From Bugula neritina (Eukaryota; Animalia; Bryozoa), in assembly GCA_964035545.1 (NCBI GenBank), contig OZ037766.1:13506722-13570721 (forward strand): a stretch of 64,000 nt of DNA, in the 5' to 3' direction. The notes under the pieces are model-generated. The model made no database searches, had not been told where the DNA came from, and saw nothing but the letters and a program-made list of their open reading frames with translations. The stretch's first letter is position 1. Every line of letters begins with the position of its first letter. Of this stretch, positions 5,801-23,393 are shown piece by piece. The translations under genes and the position numbers were made by a program.

Positions 5801-8800
5801 AGAAGGTGAATATACAGGCTGTGATAATAAGTGGTTTAGATATTATTATTCAACTATTCAATGCAGGTAAATCAAGGTAAACCATTGTTTGAATAGGCCA
5901 TAACAGTTCAGCAGGCCTTTTTAATAATTTTGTAATATGACTTTGGCTAGCTAGCATGACCACACTTTTAGGAAACTGGAGCTATCATAACTAAGTGAGA
6001 GGCATCAATATAAATTGCCAACTTGAAATGTCACTTTGACACTGCTTTGAAAATACATTTTTAAAGTTACTACACAGTAAACAGGAGTTACAAAACTAGT
6101 GGTTGGTCACTTACTTGTATCTGGGATCTTTAACATCTGGACATGCTTCAAAACTTTTGATTCCAAAAACAATGCACTCTCTTGGTGCCAAGCCAACAGG
6201 GTATGTGTCACCCACAGTACACCACTATAACAGGAAAATAATTTGCATATAACTAACAGAATCAAACAGAATAGCTCTTATATAGCACCACATACAGTAT
6301 ATGCCAATAAATATAATATTAAGTATGAATGCTCAAGGATGTATACTATCAGTTTAACAACTACATGTCTACAAGGTCATCCCTAACTGATGCAGGCTTC
6401 CACATAAGTTATACTGTGCTTGTAAAACTGTGAAACTGGGACCTGCAGAGTACCTGAGGTTGCCCGTGCTTCCCCATGACTTTGCCGAGGTCGTGGATGA
6501 GACCAGTGAGATGGAACCAGTCATCATCAGGATATTCGGCTCGGATGGCCTCTGCCGTCTGGTAAGCATGGAAGCTGTTGGCGAATTGAGCATCGGGGTC
6601 TGATTCATCCACAAAGTCAGCCAAATACTCCAAGGCTTCCATTATAGTCAGCTCCACGGTATCAAACTTGCCCCACTTCTCATGCTAACATAAAATCATA
6701 GATGACTTTGCACTTGTTTGTTTCAATACTTCTTGTTATATATGCTTATATAATTATAACACAGTTTTACAATGGAAAATCAAATTATTAAAATTGGACA
6801 TAACATAATATCTAGAAAAAATTTCACAGCTGCATAAATAGTGCTCCATCAATTATTGCCCAGCTTATAGTCCCTGTGCACAGAGTATAATGTAATATAT
6901 GACAGCACCGATTCTAATAATGTACACATTGTAAAGGATCTAACAAAGAAGCATGATAGCCCTTGTTACAAATACCACTAGAACTTTTATTTTTAGCTTT
7001 TAATGGTGATATTTGTTATTATTAGATAGTTCATTCTCCTGTGCAGCAGTCAGCTGCCTAATAATAGGTAAAGCCTAACCGCCACCTTTGTTGAAGCCAG
7101 CTTTTAGGGTTTGACAGGAACTGATCCATCTTCCTTTATGAGGTCATTACATGTGCCCCATAGTTAGCTGACCATAATTATAGCTAAATTTAGATGTAAT
7201 TACCTTTTCTTTGTGATTGCCCTGGTATATAAGGCAGCATTGAAACTCCAAAAAGACAGTCACTCATGTAGCCTAAGCTGAGCTACTTATTTTGTTAAGT
7301 TAAGTGACAAAGAGCTAAATTTTGAAGATATTATAGCAAGCTCGTCAAGAGAATAAAGGTATTTTATTATTATTCTTTGCTATTTTTAACTTGATAATGC
7401 TTTATGTCTTTTATTACAATTTTTATTGCTGTTATATTTTAATATTATATCGTGATGTTTGCTGGTATTTGAACAACTGTATTGTATGAGTTTTAGCACA
7501 CCTATATGTATTCTTTATGTTACTTGTAGTTTTTACGATTTAGAAGAAAATTAATAAAAGTGAGAGATTTGTTAAAACTTCTTCTCAGTCCGTACCAAAA
7601 CCATTTTTGTGGCGAGACCTTGCTCAACAGTAAAAACTTTATCTCAAGTGGTGAAGCAGTAAAGCGCTGCTTCCAAGTGGTGGTGAGAGAATAAAGATTC
7701 CTTTCCAAGTGGTTGTGAGAGTCGGCAGTGAAGTCCTCGTCTCCAACTAGAGATAGCAGTCCGTCAAGTTCCATTTCGCAGCATTTTCCCTACTACCTAC
7801 CCACTCCTTTCCAAGAAGTCGTACCTTCAGCCAAGAGGACAATTTCAGCATTAACATTAACATTTCATTTGGAATTAATTGAAACCTCCATTCATTCCGG
7901 AAGTAGAAGAAGGGGTGAGCAATTATATTCTTAAATACCAGGCAATCTAGGGCTTATAGTAACTTAGTATAGGAGTATTATTTGGTCCCTTTGTTGTATT
8001 GCATGTGATGACCTTGCATTGAGGGTGAGGTCGGTTCCTTGTTAATTGTTGAAATTAATTAGTTGGCATTTTTTGGTGGTGTTAGGTTGATGAATTCATA
8101 GGTTAGGAAAATTGCTTAGTAATTACTTGACAAATTAGTTGTAACGTTTTAAGTGGTGTTTGAAACAAAAATCATGTCTTCTATACATAGTGGTAGCCGT
8201 ATTTCTGAAACTAGGAAAAGTAGCAGAACTAGGGGTTTATCTGAAAAGGCTCAAGAAAATGAGCTGGTAAAAGGATTAAAGTCTGTAAATTCTTGTATCC
8301 GTAAATTTAACAAGCTGTTGAAAAGTCAACCAGTTAATAATCCAGAAAATATTTCTGAGATGCAAAGCGCAGTTTTAGAAGCTCAAACCGAGCTGCATGT
8401 TCTTGGCAATTTACCAACTAGCAGTAGTAGTGAAGATCTTAGTGAGGTAGCTAAGCAAGTAGAAACAATGGCTAAAGTTCTTGAATCTATGCAAAAAAGT
8501 ACTGAAATTGATCAAGGGCAACACAGTGCCTCACCTCCTCTTGAAGTTCAAAGCCCTAAGCATTCAACTAAGGCTAGTAGCATTTCCGCTAAAAGTAATA
8601 GGTCAATTCGAGTGGTTAAGAATAAACTTGCAGCAGCAAATGTTGATATAGAGTTAGAAACTTTAAGAAAGCAAGCACAGTTGAAAGCACAAATAGATGC
8701 AATGCAATTAGAATTGCAAGCTAGCGAATTAGAAGCTAAAAAGCAAAGAATTATGGTTAGGCGTGACGTATTAGAAGAATATGATGTAGATGAGAGGGAG

Positions 8801-11800
8801 GAAATAGAAGACGCTCTTGATGTAATTTCTTTGCATGGCGACCCAATCATTCCTCCTCTCGAAAGAGTAGCTGTAGGTGAAAATTTGAATGTTATAGCAC
8901 CTAGTTTAAACAATGAGCATCCAGCAATAGGTAACGGGCAGTCTTTGAGCAGTAACAATATCAGTGATATACATGTCCTTGCAGATTCTATAACTAAAGC
9001 TATGCATGTAAATCGTCTCCCCATACCTGAACCACCAGTTTTCTGTGGCAACCCTCTTGAGTATGCTGATTGGGAAATTTCCCTTAGAACTCTTATTGAG
9101 AGAACTAATATTCCTGAATCTGATAGAATTCATTATTTGAAAAAATATGTGGGAGGTAGTGCAAGGGAGGCAATTAGTGGATATTTCCTACTAAATTGTG
9201 ATGATGCATATTGTAAGGCAAAGGAAATTTTACGTGAACGTTTTGGTTCTAGCTATACAGTAGCTGAATCCTTTAGAACAAAACTAAATAATTGGCCTAA
9301 GATCAAACCTCATGACAGAATTTCTATTCAGAAATATTCAGATTTCTTGTGCCAATGTGAAGCTGCCATGCTTAGATTTGATGAGTTAAATATTCTCAAT
9401 GATTCCCAGCAAAATAAATTCATGTATGAAAAACTTCCTGACTGGATGTCAAGTAGGTGGAAAAGGAAGTTAACGCAATTTAGAAAGGCAAATGGTGCTT
9501 ATCCAAAGTTTGGCTTGTTTGTAGAGTTTGTAAAAACTGAATCTGATATTATTAATGACCCTGTGACAGCTAGTGTGGACCATGCTGATAGGATAGATGC
9601 TAAAAGACCAATAAGCAGCAGTTATAGTAAACCAGTGGCTAACACACGTGTAACTTCTCTTACATCAAGCAAGCACTGTATATTTTGTGACATGAGTAAC
9701 CACGAAATTGATGAATGCTTCAAGTTTGGCAAGTTGTCAGTACATGAAAGAAAGCAGTATGCAAGTAGATATAGGCTTTGTTTTCAATGCCTTAAGGCAA
9801 ATCACATCAAGGCTCAATGCAACAAAGTATGTATCTGCAAAAAATGCCAAGGCAAGCACCCCACTAGCATGCATTATGGTAGTACACGTGACAATGCAGG
9901 GAATATTGGAAGGTCTCCGTCTAATAGTGGAAGTTATACCCAAAATGATGGTCATTATAGTAGCAAAGTTACTAGCAAAAGCAGTGTAACCAATGATAAA
10001 GGAAATGTAGCATCAAACATAGATAGTGCTAGCAATGCAAACAACTGTAGTACTGTAAGAGCTAATTCTGGCCTGAGTTCCATGGTAGTGCCAGTCTGGC
10101 TGTGTGATGCAAGTGCACCCGAAAAGGAAATCTTGGTATATGCTATGCTTGATACCATGTCTGACACTACCTTTATTACAACTCAAGCAGCAGATTGTTT
10201 AAATGCACCAGGTGAAGCAACCTCATTAAAACTTACAACTATGAATGGCACTAAAAGCTCAAATGAATGCTGTAGGTACAGTGGTTTGATGGTTCGTGGG
10301 TATAACAATGCTGACAAAATAGCTATTCCTTGTGCATATTCAACTAAAGTTATTCCCCTTGACAAGTCACATATTCCATCTGCCAAAGTAGCAAATGCAT
10401 GGCCTCATTTGCAGCAAATAGCACATGAATTCCCAAGTCTTGAAAATGTACCAGTTTCTATGCTAATTGGTTATGATGTGTCTAAAGCACTTATGCCACA
10501 GCAGTTAATAGTAGGATCTCATGACACTGACCCATTTGCTGTTAGAACACCTCTAGGGTGGTGCATTGTGGGAAATACCAGCTACCCTGGCAGTAAGCAA
10601 TTTAACACGTGCTGTAGGACAGTAACCTTGACCAATGAGCATGCATGCAAAAATGAACAGACAGCTGTAACCTTTGATTGTGCTACTGCAAACTCAAGCA
10701 AGCAAATATTGCCTCAAAATGTACTTGAATTGCTACAGCAAGACTTCATGGAAAATCAAACTAGAGCATGCACAACTATGTCACAAGAAGATAAGCTATT
10801 TGTTTCCAAATTAGAAGCAGGTATTGAGCAAAATGAAGGGGGTTATATCACCATGCCTTTGCCATTTAAAACTGATGCCAAGCCCTACCTACCCAATAAC
10901 CGCTTGATGGCTGAAAAGCGACTTGAGTCACTTAAGACTAAACTTAGCAAGAATGAGCACTTGAAGCAGGATTATTTAAAATTCATGAATGACGTAATTG
11001 ATGCTGGTGATGCTGAGCTAGTGCCAGAGTGTGAAAAATCTCAAAACAACAGTACATGGTACATACCACATTTTGGTGTCTATCATCCCAAAAAACCAGG
11101 GAAAATCCGAGTAGTTTTTGATTGTAGTGCTAAATATGCAAACTTGTCTCTCAATGACCATCTTATTCAGGGCCCTGACCTAATGAATAGGCTGGTAGGT
11201 GTTCTACACAGATTTAGAAAAGGCCAAGTAGGGATTATGTGCGACATACAGAAAATGTTCCACATGTTCAAAGTTCACAAAAATGACAGAGACTACCTTC
11301 GGTTTTTATGGTACACTGATGCTAGTTTAACAAAAGTAGCAGAGTACAGGATGACTGTACATTTGTTTGGTGCGACATCTTCACCAGGATGCGCCACCTT
11401 TGGTTTACGTTACTTGGCAAATAAAAATCACGATGCAAACGATGAACACAGTGTTAGAGCTAAAGATTTTATAATCAATGATTTCTATGTTGATGATGGA
11501 TTATTGAGCTTAAATTCAGTAACAGACATGGCCAATGTAATTTCTCAAGCAGTGGATCTTTGCAAAACAGGAAATATTAGGTTGCATAAGTTTGTAAGCA
11601 ACAGTACACAGCTCCTAGATACAATACCAAATTCAGAAAAAGCTGAAACAATTAAGGACTTGAATTTGAACACAGGCAACAGTGTTCTGCCCATGGAAAG
11701 AGCATTAGGCATTAAATGGTGCACGCAGTCTGACAATTTTAAATTCTCAATGAATCTCAAACAAATCGAGCCAGCTACAAAGCGTAGAATTTTGTCAACA

Positions 11801-14800
11801 GTAGCATCTTTATTTGACCCTCTAGGCTTCTTATCTCCTTTCATACTGTGTGGCAAAAAGATTTTGCAATCTATATGTAAAGATGGGACAACATGGGATG
11901 CCCCAGTAAATGAAGATGTTAGTGCTCAGTGGCTCTCCTGGAAACATGAATTTAACATGCTAGACAATGTAGCAATACCTAGATGCATATATCCTGCTAA
12001 TTTTGATACAATTGTGAAAACTGAGCTGCATCACTTTTCAGATGCTAGTACAATAGGTTATGGTCAATGCTCCTATATCAGACTTGTAAACAACCATGGT
12101 GATGTTCATGTTGCTTTGCTTAGCGCTAAATCCAGAGTAATTCCATTGAATAAGTCAGTAACCATTCCTCGGGCTGAACTACAAGCAGCTGTAATGTCTG
12201 CAAAATTGGCTGATTCTCTTAAAGCAGATCTTAAAATTGAAAATATCACAGATGAAATATTTTGGACAGATTCAAAAGTTGTTCTAGGCTACATAACCAA
12301 TGAGGTAAAGAGGTTTCATGTTTATGTTGCAAATAGAGTGCAACAAATTAGAGATCTTAGTACACCTAACCAATGGCAGTACATTAACACACAATCTAAC
12401 CCAGCTGATATAGCATCTAGGGGAATTTCATCTATTGCCAAGTTGCTAGATTCCTGTTGGTTCAATGGGCCTGGCTTTCTACACGAGCCAGATTTGACTC
12501 ACATGCTAACCACTCGGAACAAATTTGATATTGCTAGTGATGACCCAGAGGTCAAAGCCACCACACATGTTGTTGCAGTAAATGACCTCAGTAAATCATG
12601 GAATGAGAAATTCAAAGCTTTCTCTAGCCTCTCATCAGCTGTTAGAGCAATTAGTACACTACAAAAGATAGCTAGGGCTAAATGTAAACAAACCAAAACC
12701 ACAGTTATGTCAGATGTGGCATCAACTGAAAAGGCAAAGATGCAAATTTTAAAATGGGCTCAAATGGAGTTCCTAGCTAATGAATGCAAGGAAATTAAGG
12801 CTGGAAAAGTTACCAAGAGTAACAAAATACTCAAACTTGACCCATTTACTGATAAAAATGATATGCTAAGAGTTGGGGGAAGACTAAAAAATTCAAGCCT
12901 TGCCTATGGTGAAAGCACCCTATTATTTTGCCAAAAAAGTCTCACATCACTAAGTTAGTAGTTGCATGACCACTGTCACAAACAAGTAATGCACCAAGGT
13001 CGAGGGATGACAATTGCTCAAATTCAAAATTCAGGCTATTGGATTTTAGGCTGTAATTCTTTGGTCTCCTCTCAAATAGCTAATTGTGTCACATGTAGGA
13101 AAACACGAAGTGCACCAGAGATTCAAAAAATGGCAGATTTACCATCTAAACGAATAGAACCAACCCCTCCATTCACATATGTAGGCAGTGATTGTTTTGG
13201 CCCATTTGTTGTTAAGGATAACAGAAAAGAATTGAAAAAATATGGGGTTATATTCACATGCATGGCTTCTAGGGCTATTCACATTGAGTTAGTGGACGAT
13301 TTATCTACTGATGCCTTTATAAATGCATTGCGCTGTTTCATAGCTATTAGAGGGCCCATCAGACAATTATACACACTGATAGGGGAACTAATTTTATAGG
13401 TGCTGCTAATGAGCTAGCAAGTGTTGCAAAAGAAGCAACTAGAAAAATTGAAAGCTTTTCTGAAAGTAATAGCTTCGAGTGGGTTACAAACACTCCCCAC
13501 TCAAGTCACATGGGTGGTGTCTGGGAGCGCCACATAAGAACAATCAGGTCTGTCTTAAACTCAATGCTAGCTATAAACAGCACAAGGCTAGATACTAGTA
13601 CACTGCGACTTTATTATATGAGGTAATGGCAATAGTTAACTGCAGGCCACTAATATCTCAAACAGATGAAAGTTACCCAATGCCACTAACTCCCAACCAA
13701 CTATTAACTATGAAGTCCAAAGTAGTGTTGCCTCCTCCTGGTCAATTTGATGAACAAGATGTATACTGTAGAAAACGTTGGAGAGTAGTTCAAGGGTTGG
13801 TAAATCAATTTTGGAAACGTTGGCGCACTCATTATTTGCAACAAATTCAATCCAGGCCAAAATGGTTGAAAAGGGCTGCTAACATTGCTGTGGGAGATGT
13901 AGTACTTTTAGTTAGTGATGACAAAAACAGGCGAGATTGGCCATTAGGCAGAGTAGTGGAAGTATTTCCTAGTGATGACAACTTAGTTAGGAGAGTTAGG
14001 CTTAGCATAGCTGATGCAGAAAAGTTAGACAGAAAGGGTAGAAGAATAAAATCAGAAAAAACAGCTTGAGAGGCCAATTCAAAAACTAATCTTCTTGTTT
14101 AGGCCCTCCTAAATTTGATACGTGCCCTAAATGAATTAGAACCTACTGAAAGTTAATTTTTTTGAATCAGTTTAGTTAATTTCCCTGAGTGAAATTAAAG
14201 GGGGGAGTGTAAAGGATCTAACAAAGAAGCATGATAGCCCTTGTTACAAATACCACTAGAACTTTTATTTTTAGCTTTTAATGGTGATATTTGTTATTAT
14301 TAGATAGTTCATTCTCCTGTGCAGCAGTCAGCTGCCTAATAATAGGTAAAGCCTAACCGCCACCTTTGTTGAAGCCAGCTTTTAGGGTTTGACAGGAACT
14401 GATCCATCTTCCTTTATGAGGTCATTACATGTGCCCCATAGTTAGCTGACCATAATTATAGCTAAATTTAGATGTAATTACCTTTTCTTTGTGATTGCCC
14501 TGGTATATAAGGCAGCATTGAAACTCCAAAAAGACAGTCACTCATGTAGCCTAAGCTGAGCTACTTATTTTGTTAAGTTAAGTGACAAAGAGCTAAATTT
14601 TGAAGATATTATAGCAAGCTCGTCAAGAGAATAAAGGTATTTTATTATTATTCTTTGCTATTTTTAACTTGATAATGCTTTATGTCTTTTATTACAATTT
14701 TTATTGCTGTTATATTTTAATATTATATCGTGATGTTTGCTGGTATTTGAACAACTGTATTGTATGAGTTTTAGCACACCTATATGTATTCTTTATGTTA

Positions 14801-16581
14801 CTTGTAGTTTTTACGATTTAGAAGAAAATTAATAAAAGTGAGAGATTTGTTAAAACTTCTTCTCAGTCCGTACCAAAACCATTTTTGTGGCGAGACCTTG
14901 CTCAACACACATACTGGCTGCAAAATTATCACAACACTAATTACTATAATTCAAAAATGAAATAACAGCAAAGAATGTTGTTTGATTATAGATATTTGGA
15001 ACCCACAAGTTAGAACAACTACATATATGTCATTTCTAACATACATAGAATGTGCTTCAAGAATGCCCGCAAGAGATTTAATTAGCACATCTTTTCATAA
15101 TATTCAGAAAAACTGTGCATTTGGTCAAACATGTACCTGTACATATTATTCTAGTGCCAAAGTCTGATATTATCAAATTGTGAATGACTAACACCAATCT
15201 CACTTGTATTAGACTTGACTTTAAATGTAATAAAATTTACTAAAATGAAACGAATTATCTTTAACAAACTTACTTGAGACTTGACAAACTCCACAGTTTG
15301 GGAAGTATGCATTTTATAGTACGTGTCCTTCACCTTGGCGTCCACTTCATTTGTCGGCTCCTTAAAATAAATCAAAATTATCATGAATAATGCCAATTGA
15401 GTTTGTGAAATGTGAATATCTAAAACCATAAAGAGAACTGTACTTGATCTTCAATTGGTACCATTTTGGTTGGGTATAAAAACATCCATACTATCATATT
15501 CAAATTAACCATAGTGCCTACATTAATTTCAAAGATATTTGCCCTTAGAGTACTATTAAATCTATTGCCATCAATGATTAACCAATGCGTCTTTATAGAC
15601 TTTGAGAGTGACACTTATTCTCGGTCAAATGACATCTGTCTGACATCTATCTGCTAAAAAATGAGAAATCTTATACACTGTACAGTATACATTAACAACA
15701 GTAACAAGCTAATCTGTAGCTACACCCCAGCCCCTTCCTTGCCCTCTCCCTCATTACTTGGAACATGTTCAGACAGACTTGAGGTAGCCTGATAAGTTAA
15801 CAACATTCTCTAAATTGTAATCTTGAACATTTACCAAGGTTTGGTAGGTAGTGCTTGGGTCTGGAGTATTATGACTGTAATAAAACTCATTTGGATACAA
15901 GTTCCTCATTTGGCCAATGCCAAAAATAAACCTTTAAAAACTATACAACCATTAAGTAAACATGTTTATATTATTTTCAGTTAAAGGGTATATTTGAAAG
16001 TGAATAAAAATAGTTTTCGTAAAAACAAAACACTGAGCGCTATAAGTGAATGCCTATTAATAAGTAACTCGATATGTAATACATATAATAAGACTTCAGT
16101 TTGTATTGTGTGAATAAACAAGCGTTATAGCCATTGATAGTTGTGAATATACAGGACTTGAACTACTACTATTGATTAACTTTACATAAAGGTGTTCAGC
16201 AAGAGCAGGCAGTTATTATTAATTACTATTTAGTACACTAGTTGAGTTACATAAAAGAATACCTCATGATACACTCTGTAACCTTTTTCTTTAGCATCAG
16301 CTACCTGTGTCAATGAGCCACCCTCCTAAAATTATAGGTAGCAGTTTGTATCAACACAAATAACAACTGTAAACAACTCAACACCCACTCTTTATATTAT
16401 AGTGCTTACAGCATGACAGCTATACTCACAACTAGACCGAAGCCGGAGGTTACCTTTTCCCTAAATACTGTAGATATAACAAACAAATTTACAATCAACA
16501 GGTAAACTAGTGCTCTGACTAACTTCACAAATCACCACATGTCTAGTTTACTTTCGGTCTTACCTGATTAAGAAGTCTCAT
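2887..16581 (-). CDS. MIOX: myo-inositol oxygenase, 8 coding exons, 283 aa
   Basis: Exons 16564-16581, 16263-16325, 15274-15360, 6454-6684, 6115-6224, 4140-4207, 3361-3526 and 2887-2995. All introns are GT-AG with consistent phases (852 nt total). Motifs: QTVEFV, DESDPD, HAYQTAE, IHDLGK, VGDTYPVG, SWGHDEY, RYHSFYP, FDLYSK; the di-iron ligand residues are present. Confidence 0.95.
6930..7629 (+). repeat. 5' LTR of the BEL/Pao element
   Basis: Direct repeat of 14208-14907 with no difference found by eye. TATATAA at 7226-7232, Inr-like CAGTCA at ~7257, AATAAA at 7352 and 7553. Confidence 0.97.
8174..14112 (+). pseudogene. BEL/Pao Gag-Pol polyprotein, open through Gag/PR/RT/RNase H and frameshifted in the integrase region
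   Basis: ORF 8153-12958 (first ATG 8174) has three BEL-type zinc knuckles (CIFC..H....C, CFQC...H....C, CKKC...HPTSMH), protease LDTMS, RT YVDD and RNase H HHFSDAS. Integrase HHCC, DCFGP, TDRGTNF, GGVWER and the C-terminal WPLGRV / LERPIQKL segments lie in several frames separated by about 5 indels. Confidence 0.93.
14208..14907 (+). repeat. 3' LTR of the BEL/Pao element
   Basis: Direct repeat of 6930-7629, preceded by the PPT and followed by TSD CACAT. Confidence 0.97.
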
Positions 16582-20821: not shown

Positions 20822-23393
20822 ATGAACTGGACAAATGTTTCTCAGGATTTTAACAATACAACAGACGCGAACATCATCGTAGAGAGCTATGCCACGAAAC
20901 AACTTTTGTTAACAGTTTTACAGAGCTGTATTTTGAGCATTGGCTTGGCTGGAAACATCATGTCTATCGGATGCTTGTGCTGGTCTCATCACAGAAGAAG
21001 GAAACTGACACGAATCTCTTTGTACATCCTGCACATGTGCATAGCAGACGCAATGGTGTCGATATTCAACGTTGCCCCAAACCTCTGTGTAATTACCAAC
21101 TATCCAGCTGCATGTCCATTTCAGTCCAACAGCATTTCCTGCAAAATTACAAACTTTCTCTCGATCACATCCATATATGGATCCACTTATGTTTTAGTGA
21201 TGACATCACTCGATAGATTTTTGGCTATTTGCTACCCATTAGTTGCGCAGCGTTTTACAAAAAGACACGTTCACATAAGCTGCCTGTTTGCCTGGTGTCT
21301 GTCAATAGCTTTTAGTACCCCTCAACTCTCAATTTTTTATTTCAATGAAACTACAGATAACTGTGCCGCAGCATGGAGTGATGTGAAGCACAAACATATC
21401 AAGTATGAAAACAGCTACACTGTCTGGTTTGCCACGGCCATTTGGATTCTGCCTTGTATCATAATTACTGTGTGTTACATCAGTATTACGAGCGTCATTT
21501 GGAAACGACCGGCATATATTCGTAAGAACACAAGGACCAGGCATGGGCTTACTTCCGAAAGAGGGAGAACCAACATATTGATGAAACCAGTGCTGCTGAC
21601 ATTTGCAGTGGTCATTGGCTACGTACTTTGCTGGTCTCCATGGATGATTACCACACTCATCACACAATTTAATAGCGAATTTTTAAACAAACGTAAGTAA
21701 TTTTTTCACATTTATAAAGCAACTTTACTAGAAGTGTGTTAAATCACCAACTTGGCTATTAAGGATTTTAAAAAAACATTATATACAATCCCATTTATAA
21801 TATTGAAATTTAATGATTTCGTGACAGGTTACATTGAATATGTATGTATAAAAGCTACCGAGCACCGTCCAGTAATGCATCTTAACCTAGTAGGAATTAT
21901 ACAACATATTATATGGATGTAAATTTATCAACTTGTTAGACTTTGAAACTATCACTACATTAAAATCTTTTTTGTGCATGACTTCTATATCTCAAGATGT
22001 TGCATTAATCTGCTCAAAAGCTTAGAGGTATTTGCAATAAATGATCTTCAATAGAAATGTTCACAAAGTCATAAATCCTGAGCAATCAGAAGCAACAGTT
22101 GCTGATCACAAACAATATTGTACTGGTATAGGTTATAAAACTTATGTTTCCAAAGTCTAAAAACAGAATAGAAGAATAATCTTTTGCACTTGGTGTCTCG
22201 TTATTTGGCAATTTTTTATTAGAAAGCAAGTTTGCATATTCTGCTTTCACTATTATTTAAGCATCAGCCAGCAGACTTTTATAACATTGATAAGAATGAT
22301 ACATTTATAAAGCTGATATCAGAGTTGAATTAGCAGATCTTCCCCAAATGCTCACCTCTGCTTGTAAAACAGTTGCTCAATTATGCAAATTGGTTTACCT
22401 AACCAATATAGAAACTACCATAGCTTTTCTCGGTCTTTTTATGCTATAATGAAATAATATGTGAAATTATTATACATGCCTGAATGAAAATATTGTTGTA
22501 ACTGTAATATTGTGTAAAGTATATAAAAAGTTAGGCTACGCAATGTTCAGCATTTCATCCATTAATTCAAATATCCTTGTTTGCAAGTGACTCTATGTAA
22601 CAAATAATTGGCTTGTATTGATTCAATCATGCTAATTGTCATGTACAGAGTAATATGCACTATTACAAATGCCTATTTTTTAAATTAATGTGTTAAAACA
22701 CAGAGTCCTGTAATTAATTGTAATTCAAGCATAAAGGGTTTGATTTAAAAATTATTTTATAAACTGAAAATTTGACAGTCTGGAATATAGTTTTAAATAT
22801 TGCCTTGAATAGAGTCTTGAACACTGCTTAAAAACATATGCAGTGTCAAATGTTTGATATATTACAAAAATGAAGATAGATAGCTTTAATGATCATTTAC
22901 AAAGATTATGCAATCTCAAATAAATTACCTTACAAATTTCATTATAAGTTCTTATTGACTATAAGCTCAGACCTTTTTTCCAATTGAAGATGCCAAATCA
23001 AACTGTCTCTGAGCAGAAATAATCTGAAACTGTCATTTTATTCACTGCGAACCTATATTATTATTATTGTTTCTAGGAACGAGGGCGAAAACTGAAACCG
23101 TTTCCATGCTCACTTATTTGATTGGGTTTAATAGTTGTCTAAATCCGTTCATTTATTTGGGCTTCAATTGGAGGAGTATATTTGTTAAATCAAAGAGCAG
23201 AGAAGCCACAAGTATAGTTATGTCTTTGTCACACTACAATAGTACTCAGCAAAGAAAAGCAGCCCACACAGAAGCTGAGGAGCTTGACAATCTCTATCCA
23301 TGCAGTGGGGAGGAGTCCAAGGAAGAATGCTTGAATGCCACAAGTGATTCAATGCTGAATTTACCCGAGTGGAGTCGCTCGGTGCCAGAATGA
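20822..23393 (+). CDS. Rhodopsin-class neuropeptide GPCR, vasopressin/oxytocin (vasotocin/conopressin) receptor-like, 395 aa
   Basis: Exons 20822-21692 and 23077-23393 with a phase-1 GT-AG intron between TM6 and TM7. Motifs: GN (TM1), HMCIADAMV, STYVLVMTSLDRFLAICYPL, FSTPQ, CWSP, NSCLNPFIY; N-terminal N-glycosylation sequons. Confidence 0.88.

Follow-up and report, generated by a model that had tools for sequence, protein, structure and literature searches.

The stretch of Bugula neritina DNA analyzed here (64,000 nt of contig OZ037766.1, positions 13,506,722 to 13,570,721; hereafter the window) carries a long terminal repeat (LTR) retrotransposon that, judged by its sequence, is a BEL/Pao element of the Semotivirus type. 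This element probably primes its minus-strand DNA with its own spliced RNA: the bases that follow its 5' LTR are complementary to the junction that would form on removal of an intron lying within the LTR. Comparative analysis shows a complement that is split, that co-varies and whose end falls exactly at the position required of a minus-strand primer; it also shows an intron conserved with consensus splice sites, and the removal of such an intron in RNA that had been reverse-transcribed. The original prediction, made from the window alone, held in essence that the primer-binding site pairs with an exon–exon junction inside the LTR; this claim is supported by co-variation, by donors chosen blind to the primer site and by a processed sister copy.

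The split complement in the window element

The 5' LTR (6930–7629, plus strand, 700 nt, TG...CA) is identical to the 3' LTR (14208–14907, plus strand, 700 nt). Within it, also on the plus strand, lie a TATA box (7226–7232) that is conserved in diverged solo LTRs, a predicted exon 1 (7258–7358) whose 5' end is placed from the TATA box only, a GT...AG segment of 171 nt and 77% A+T (7359–7529, with a second copy at 14637–14807), the first seven bases of exon 2 (7530–7536), which would form the 3' end of the primer if the cut falls between 7536 and 7537 as predicted, and an AATAAA polyadenylation signal (7553–7558) located 17 nt beyond that cut. The donor (AAAG/GTATTT, exon end 7358), the acceptor (TTGTAG, intron end 7529), the TATA box and the polyadenylation signal were all confirmed at the positions first reported. 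With its GT and AG ends, its agreement with the donor and acceptor consensus and the pyrimidine tract that precedes the acceptor, the segment has the features expected of a spliceosomal intron. The diverged relatives of the window family are solo LTRs without a primer site, from which only the conservation of GT and AG can be read; both dinucleotides are kept in solo LTRs that are merely 73–83% alike.

The putative primer-binding site (7630–7645, plus strand) consists of 13 bases complementary to the junction and three more past a bulge, and its 16 bases read as originally given. The pairing scheme proposed with it was reproduced throughout: 7353–7358 joined to 7530–7536 is the exact reverse complement of 7630–7642 (13 bp), 7349–7351 pairs with 7643–7645 past one bulged A, and unspliced RNA offers nine contiguous pairs (7528–7536 with 7630–7638). 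At the end of the duplex, C7536 pairs with G7630, the first base past the LTR. Pairing cannot continue to G7537, which stands opposite A7629, the final base of the LTR; this geometry fits a cut after the last paired base. Among the 30 GT sites upstream of the acceptor, only that at 7359 extends the match (by 6 nt), the next best adding 2 nt.

For the window element alone, a chance match in A+T-rich sequence is conceivable: a decoy test gave p ~0.016, or 0.14 with decoys that start with CT like the real tail (only six decoys). This doubt is removed by the comparative data described below. About 30 elements show this architecture with sequences that differ among them, a recurrence that effectively refutes chance complementarity and leaves it with next to no credibility.

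One base after the AATAAA signal (7553–7566), the window LTR also contains a good donor-like GTGAGA (7560), which could be the start of a second leader intron or could, as a U1 site, dampen polyadenylation within the 5' LTR. GTGAGA was not seen at that position in families B or F, which are introduced in the following sections.

BEL/Pao families of the Bugula genome

A protein search of the genome identified many further BEL/Pao families, with 27–59% identity in the reverse transcriptase, and the split match was found in five of them with sequences that differ on both sides. In family B (locus L068, minus strand), exon 1 ends in AAAGAG, the intron spans 217 nt and exon 2 starts with TTTTTAC; the primer site, GTAAAAACTCTTT, makes 13 contiguous pairs, followed by a bulged A and three more. 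Compared with the window family there are two base differences per strand, both compensated. Family E (L070) also has an intron of 217 nt, between the exon 1 end ACAAG and the exon 2 start TTTTCAC, and its primer site, GTGAAAACTTGT, forms 12 contiguous pairs. Twelve contiguous pairs are likewise formed by family G (L072; exon 1 end TAAAG, intron 221 nt, exon 2 start ATTTCAC, primer site GTGAAATCTTTA), 13 by family H (L079 and L077; CAAAAG, 205 nt, ACTTCAC, GTGAAGTCTTTTG) and 11 by family F2 (L080 and L078; AAGAG, 162 nt, TTTCAC, GTGAAACTCTT). One GT site stands out in each family, with a duplex that reaches as far as the first base beyond the presumed end of the LTR. The comparison set aside the distant families C, I and J.

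Six families of a single genome thus have six primer sites, each matching its own LTR, an observation that bears directly on whether priming relies on a host tRNA (transfer RNA), on a tRNA half or on another small RNA, in the manner of the internal tRNA priming of copia-type elements. Some BEL/Pao elements do use a tRNA, such as Achilles, which has been reported with a tRNA-Tyr site (PMC4580426), and the tRNA scan made here covered the window rather than all tRNAs of the genome. However, no tRNA-type site (TGG...) was found within a few bases of the window LTR, the first TGG lying 20 nt further on, and the window region gave no match to tRNA genes or Rfam families. The 13-mer of the window primer site and its complement, searched on both strands in a way that would also match intronless LTRs of the family, occurred 62 times in the genome as against 61 for the reversed control, and seven of these occurrences were the element's own copies. 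A search for a host RNA matching the primer site had been put forward as a check on the prediction; the scan of the window yielded no such RNA, and the genome-wide count was level with its control. A host primer cannot account for six different sites in one genome that each fit their own LTR, and we consider such a primer extremely unlikely.

The primer-site unit of family B is repeated in tandem directly after the LTR (L068, minus strand, ~1395–1491), as three exact 27-nt copies followed by a 26-nt variant and a degenerate unit. At the equivalent position, the window family has a degenerate 32-nt tandem repeat in its leader (7648–7721, plus strand, 2.3 copies) that partly resembles the primer-site unit. 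Priming at an inner copy would lengthen U5 and may be a way in which such repeats arise or are used.

A 24-nt complement in family J was considered as a primer site and rejected, as it belongs to a ~65-nt foldback. The 5' region of a distant BEL family (L074, minus strand, ~1700–2040) contains an inverted repeat of ~65 nt with a 200-nt spacer, probably an inserted foldback element.

Co-variation and the choice of donor

Eleven elements were curated for comparison of the junctions with the primer sites. Cognate combinations form 10–13 contiguous pairs (mean 11.5) and non-cognate combinations a mean of 4.0; the set includes seven different exon 2 starts (6-7-mers) and nine different exon 1 ends (5-6-mers). 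Co-variation between primer site and junction across BEL families, which had been suggested as a check, was found in both halves of the junction and in about 30 elements. The complement starts at the first base past the LTR in all nine elements that have two LTRs and thus a fixed boundary, namely the window element, family B, two from Watersipora, and those from Danio, Littorina, Glandiceps, Astatotilapia and Amphiprion.

The position of the donor was also predicted without reference to the primer site. The GT that matches the primer site is the top-scoring one in seven of the 11 curated elements, or in nine when sites upstream of the TATA box are discounted. Among 22 metagenome loci, the donor with the top score, chosen blind, extends the complement by 4–7 nt in 12 (two of which are identical copies), and reversed-tail decoys did so in 0 of 22.

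These results can be set against Tf1-like self-priming from the unspliced transcript, in which only the helix of 8–9 bp formed by the acceptor AG and the start of exon 2 would count and the match to exon 1 would be incidental. In the minimum-energy fold of the unspliced window RNA, the 9-bp helix closes U5, and families whose exon 1 ends in AG keep 8–9 pairs without splicing. The ends of exon 1 nevertheless co-vary with bases 8–13 of the primer site, and the success of the blind donors, compared with that of the decoys, speaks against this reading as well. Further evidence comes from loci in which exon 1 does not end in AG: L154 and L090 (CG), L092 and L113 (AT), L123, L129, L156 and L168 (TG), and also L085 (CG, AT or TG). 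In these loci the primer site has the matching bases, and pairing amounts to 5–7 bp in the unspliced form versus 10–12 in the spliced form; L092 and L113 are distinguished by two changes that compensate each other. Loci of this kind are the strongest cases. Priming by the unspliced transcript is accordingly judged very unlikely.

All 11 curated elements have a G directly past the predicted cut, often followed by GTG (..AC/GGTG; 7537–7540 in the window). A base other than G occupies this position in L123, L129, L135 and L156. The G or GTG past the predicted cut may be a recognition context for the cut.

Related elements in other animals

The closest named polyproteins are those of the bryozoan Watersipora subatra, followed by many from fish. 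Elements with two LTRs were recovered from Watersipora (L081, 12 contiguous pairs; L076, 10), from Danio rerio (L082, 11 contiguous pairs, a 2-nt bulge and five more pairs), from Littorina saxatilis (L083, 10 contiguous pairs across an intron of 648 nt), from Glandiceps talaboti (L084, 10 contiguous pairs), from Astatotilapia (L167, 11 contiguous pairs, with a weak donor) and from Amphiprion (L168, 11 contiguous pairs, exon 1 ending in TG). The zebrafish copy is young, its two LTRs being 99.8% identical. Three assembly contigs (L075, L085, and L086) agree with the split architecture as well.

A scan of metagenomes with one protein found no loci. Eighty further loci came from a scan of metagenome contigs that started from an alignment, and 22 of them had a recognizable acceptor, a primer site and upstream sequence. 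The contigs that were inspected look like DNA assemblies with collapsed LTRs, not like transcripts. Overall, the split match was found in about 30 elements, which come from bryozoans, fish, snails and acorn worms and include about 17 metagenome contigs; its 10–14 contiguous pairs end at the LTR boundary in every case.

Between the two Watersipora subatra families, L076 and L081, the junction of one fits the primer site of the other better than it fits its own (12 versus 10 pairs). This cross-fit could stem from a recent change in the site or from priming across families.

A processed copy in family F

Family F of the Bugula genome exists in two forms. Most of its LTRs carry a GT...AG segment of 162 nt, which is gone from both LTRs of the element at C3:6956099-6964160 (its 5' part lies in L071) and from two older LTRs of the family. 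Over ~430 nt, this element is identical to an intron-bearing sister apart from the loss of the segment and two substitutions. Exact removal of a GT...AG segment is the signature of splicing followed by reverse transcription, and the predicted intron is therefore spliced at the predicted sites in RNA that takes part in replication; such removal was seen in DNA, in family F only.

Both substitutions fall in the duplex between primer and primer site. The first, C to T in a CpG, affects the last primer base and leaves a G:U pair; the second changes A to T within the primer site, where exon 1 was previously mismatched and can now pair. A site repaired in this way is compatible with its re-copying from the primer and, as a single case, suggests it. 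In the intronless copy, the complement is contiguous in the DNA and still lies ~20 nt from the predicted start.

The change from C to T at the last primer base, in a CpG, is recurrent: it affects base 7 of exon 2 in L013 and L021, of the window family, and base 6 in L071, of family F. It converts the terminal G:C pair to G:U.

Proposed priming mechanism

Transcription of the window element would start near 7258, as placed from the TATA box at 7226. The host spliceosome would then excise the LTR intron of 171 nt and join 7353–7358 to 7530–7536, and the junction would anneal to the 13–16 bases after the 5' LTR. A cut after C7536, probably made by the element's RNase H by analogy with Tf1, would leave a 3'-OH opposite the first base after the LTR. 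From there, reverse transcriptase would copy U5 and produce a strong-stop DNA running from 7629 back to 7537, which would be transferred through a short R extending from 7537 to the poly(A) site after 7558. Exon 1 and the intron would be recovered from the unspliced 3' R.

Two variants of this scheme can be envisaged. In the cis variant, the primer would be the 5' end of the very RNA that is copied. In the trans variant, a separate spliced transcript, perhaps a short one that ended at the poly(A) site of the 5' LTR, would prime on unspliced genomic RNA. The intron would survive because splicing spares the 3' R that is copied or, under the trans variant, the template as a whole. The trans variant fits as well as the cis variant, and it has no need for splicing to differ between the two ends of one molecule.

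Several points weigh against priming by spliced RNA. The cut, the primer and the strong-stop DNA are predicted only, and the 3' intron copy would have to escape splicing in the same molecule. The joint of 7358 to 7530 was not seen in the contigs of four runs, which covered donor and acceptor in unspliced form; in these runs, three of which were guessed to be RNA, U3 depth was 2–5 times the internal depth and flanks of other insertions were present, so that the runs are DNA-like and the splice-read test is void rather than negative. A permutation test with free choice of donor among 17–65 GT sites was weak (per-element p of 0.02–0.6; Fisher 0.003); it was too permissive and was replaced by the blind donors described above, whose score itself came from a weight matrix entered by hand. 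The exon 1 share of the match is merely 3 nt in Watersipora P0005, L086, Glandiceps, L118 and L135, and 4 nt with a weak donor in Astatotilapia. In addition, a bulge or mismatch past the 10–13 pairs recurs in most curated elements, several of which then have 2–5 more pairs, and such a recurrent bulge would not be expected if a long primer were simply copied into the site.

It has also to be considered that the pairing of junction and site is real but serves the control of splicing, dimerization or packaging, with priming left to some host RNA. Co-variation demonstrates pairing, not priming; the primer and the strong-stop DNA are predicted only, and a bulge that recurs after 10–13 pairs hints at a structured element. 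A regulatory helix, however, need not end at the LTR boundary, which is where the 3' end of a primer belongs and where the duplex ends in nine of nine elements. Nor is there another candidate primer site near the boundary, and a separate host primer would have to be reconciled with six sites in one genome and with a 13-mer that is not enriched. This alternative is regarded as unlikely, though less so than the others.

Structure of the window copy and neighboring sequences

The element is flanked by a 5-bp target-site duplication, CACAT (left copy at 6925–6929, repeated at 14908–14912 after the 3' LTR). Its LTRs begin with TG and end with CA, and a polypurine tract (14197–14207, plus strand) precedes the 3' LTR, as it does the 3' LTRs of sister copies; these are features of BEL/Pao LTR elements. 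On the plus strand, the gag-pol reading frame (8153–12958) extends over 1601 aa to an in-frame stop, and its polyprotein contains Peptidase_A17/Pao (PF05380, 7.9e-48) and DUF1759 (PF03564, 4.8e-08). Downstream, also on the plus strand, follow an integrase zinc-binding piece (12962–13399), which shares its frame with gag-pol, and a DUF5641 piece (13626–14069), which lies in another frame and hence indicates a frameshift in addition to the stop. Related polyproteins of 1900–2100 aa have the same domain set.

About seven full copies of the window family, at 99–100% identity, together with many solo LTRs, at 98–100%, are present in the 216-Mb genome. Three sister copies encode 1984 aa without a stop. 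The window copy has the in-frame stop (12956–12958) and the later frame change (13399–13626) and yet has identical LTRs, which indicates that it is a recent insertion of an RNA that was already defective. Presumably, this defective RNA was mobilized in trans.

At L002 (C5:5973116-5976906), an inverted 93-nt piece of the LTR 3' end (1369–1461) lies 40 nt upstream of a 5' LTR, which is itself preceded by a polypurine tract; this arrangement is a rearranged or nested pair of copies. Near the window element, a host gene is represented by an intronless frame for a rhodopsin-type G-protein-coupled receptor (20822–21700; 7tm_1, 1.9e-31).

Comparison with known priming systems and significance

The Tf1 and Tf2 elements of fission yeast are self-primed, and the same has been reported for other Ty3/gypsy elements of the Tf1/sushi group. 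The complement of Tf1 comprises the initial 11 bases of the transcript, which form one uninterrupted run in the DNA. The cut that creates the 3'-OH of the Tf1 primer reportedly requires the element's RNase H, according to Levin and co-workers. As in Tf1, the site next to the 5' LTR of the elements described here complements their own transcript (here, its spliced form only) and not a tRNA, and a duplex of 11–13 bp ends at the U5 boundary; a cut after the last paired base is required. Unlike that of Tf1, the complement lies ~25–150 nt from the predicted start (~100 nt in the window), is split by an intron of 60–650 nt and exists after splicing only. The elements also differ from Tf1 in their Pao-type domains, which place them in the BEL/Pao superfamily rather than in the Tf1/sushi lineage of Ty3/gypsy.

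With retroviruses and tRNA-primed LTR elements, including Achilles (PMC4580426), the present elements share a site located immediately after U5, and perhaps also the re-copying of that site from the primer, which is suggested by the one processed copy. They differ from them in having no TGG... and no complement to a tRNA, and in a site that is specific to each family and follows its own LTR. As in copia, which uses an internal fragment of tRNA-iMet, TGG is absent from the start of the site and cleavage (here, a predicted one) creates the primer's 3' end; the copia site, in contrast, is constant across its users and matches a host tRNA, whereas here the site varies with the LTR of the element. 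A spliceosomal site in or next to the LTR-derived 5' end of the transcript is also known from human T-cell leukemia virus and bovine leukemia virus, from foamy virus and from the leader of human immunodeficiency virus. Those retroviral donors serve subgenomic mRNAs and belong to introns that end far downstream, whereas here the whole intron lies within the LTR and the junction complements the primer site.

Since some BEL/Pao elements such as Achilles use a tRNA (PMC4580426), the feature is that of a clade rather than of the superfamily as a whole. Priming in BEL/Pao is barely treated in the searchable literature, and the main survey of the superfamily mentions neither primer site nor tRNA nor intron (PMC3118150). 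Self-priming in BEL/Pao, or a primer made by splicing, was not described in the full-text literature searched, whose coverage did not extend to subscription papers such as the early descriptions of BEL and Suzu, so that priority is uncertain.

On balance, we lean toward a broader proposal, with less confidence than we place in spliced-RNA priming of the window element. Under this proposal, the members of a large BEL/Pao clade, found in bryozoans, teleosts, gastropods and hemichordates at the least, would replicate only once the spliceosome has assembled their primer, which would couple retrotransposition to splicing. Each cycle would rewrite the primer site from the junction, which would account for the perfect co-variation, and intron-bearing and intronless (Tf1-like) lineages would interconvert depending on whether the 3' R that is copied is spliced; the primer may even be a separate short spliced LTR transcript acting in trans.

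If this is true, a new entry would stand beside the tRNA 3' end, the tRNA fragment, the element's own 5' end, target DNA and protein as sources of primers, and it would be the first primer that a host RNA-processing machine must build. It would account for the failure of LTR annotation tools to detect a tRNA site in such elements, and it would provide a simple sequence rule by which the clade can be recognized. It also predicts that the efficiency of splicing is linked to transposition, and the young zebrafish copy, which has the same architecture, would make the proposal directly testable in that animal.

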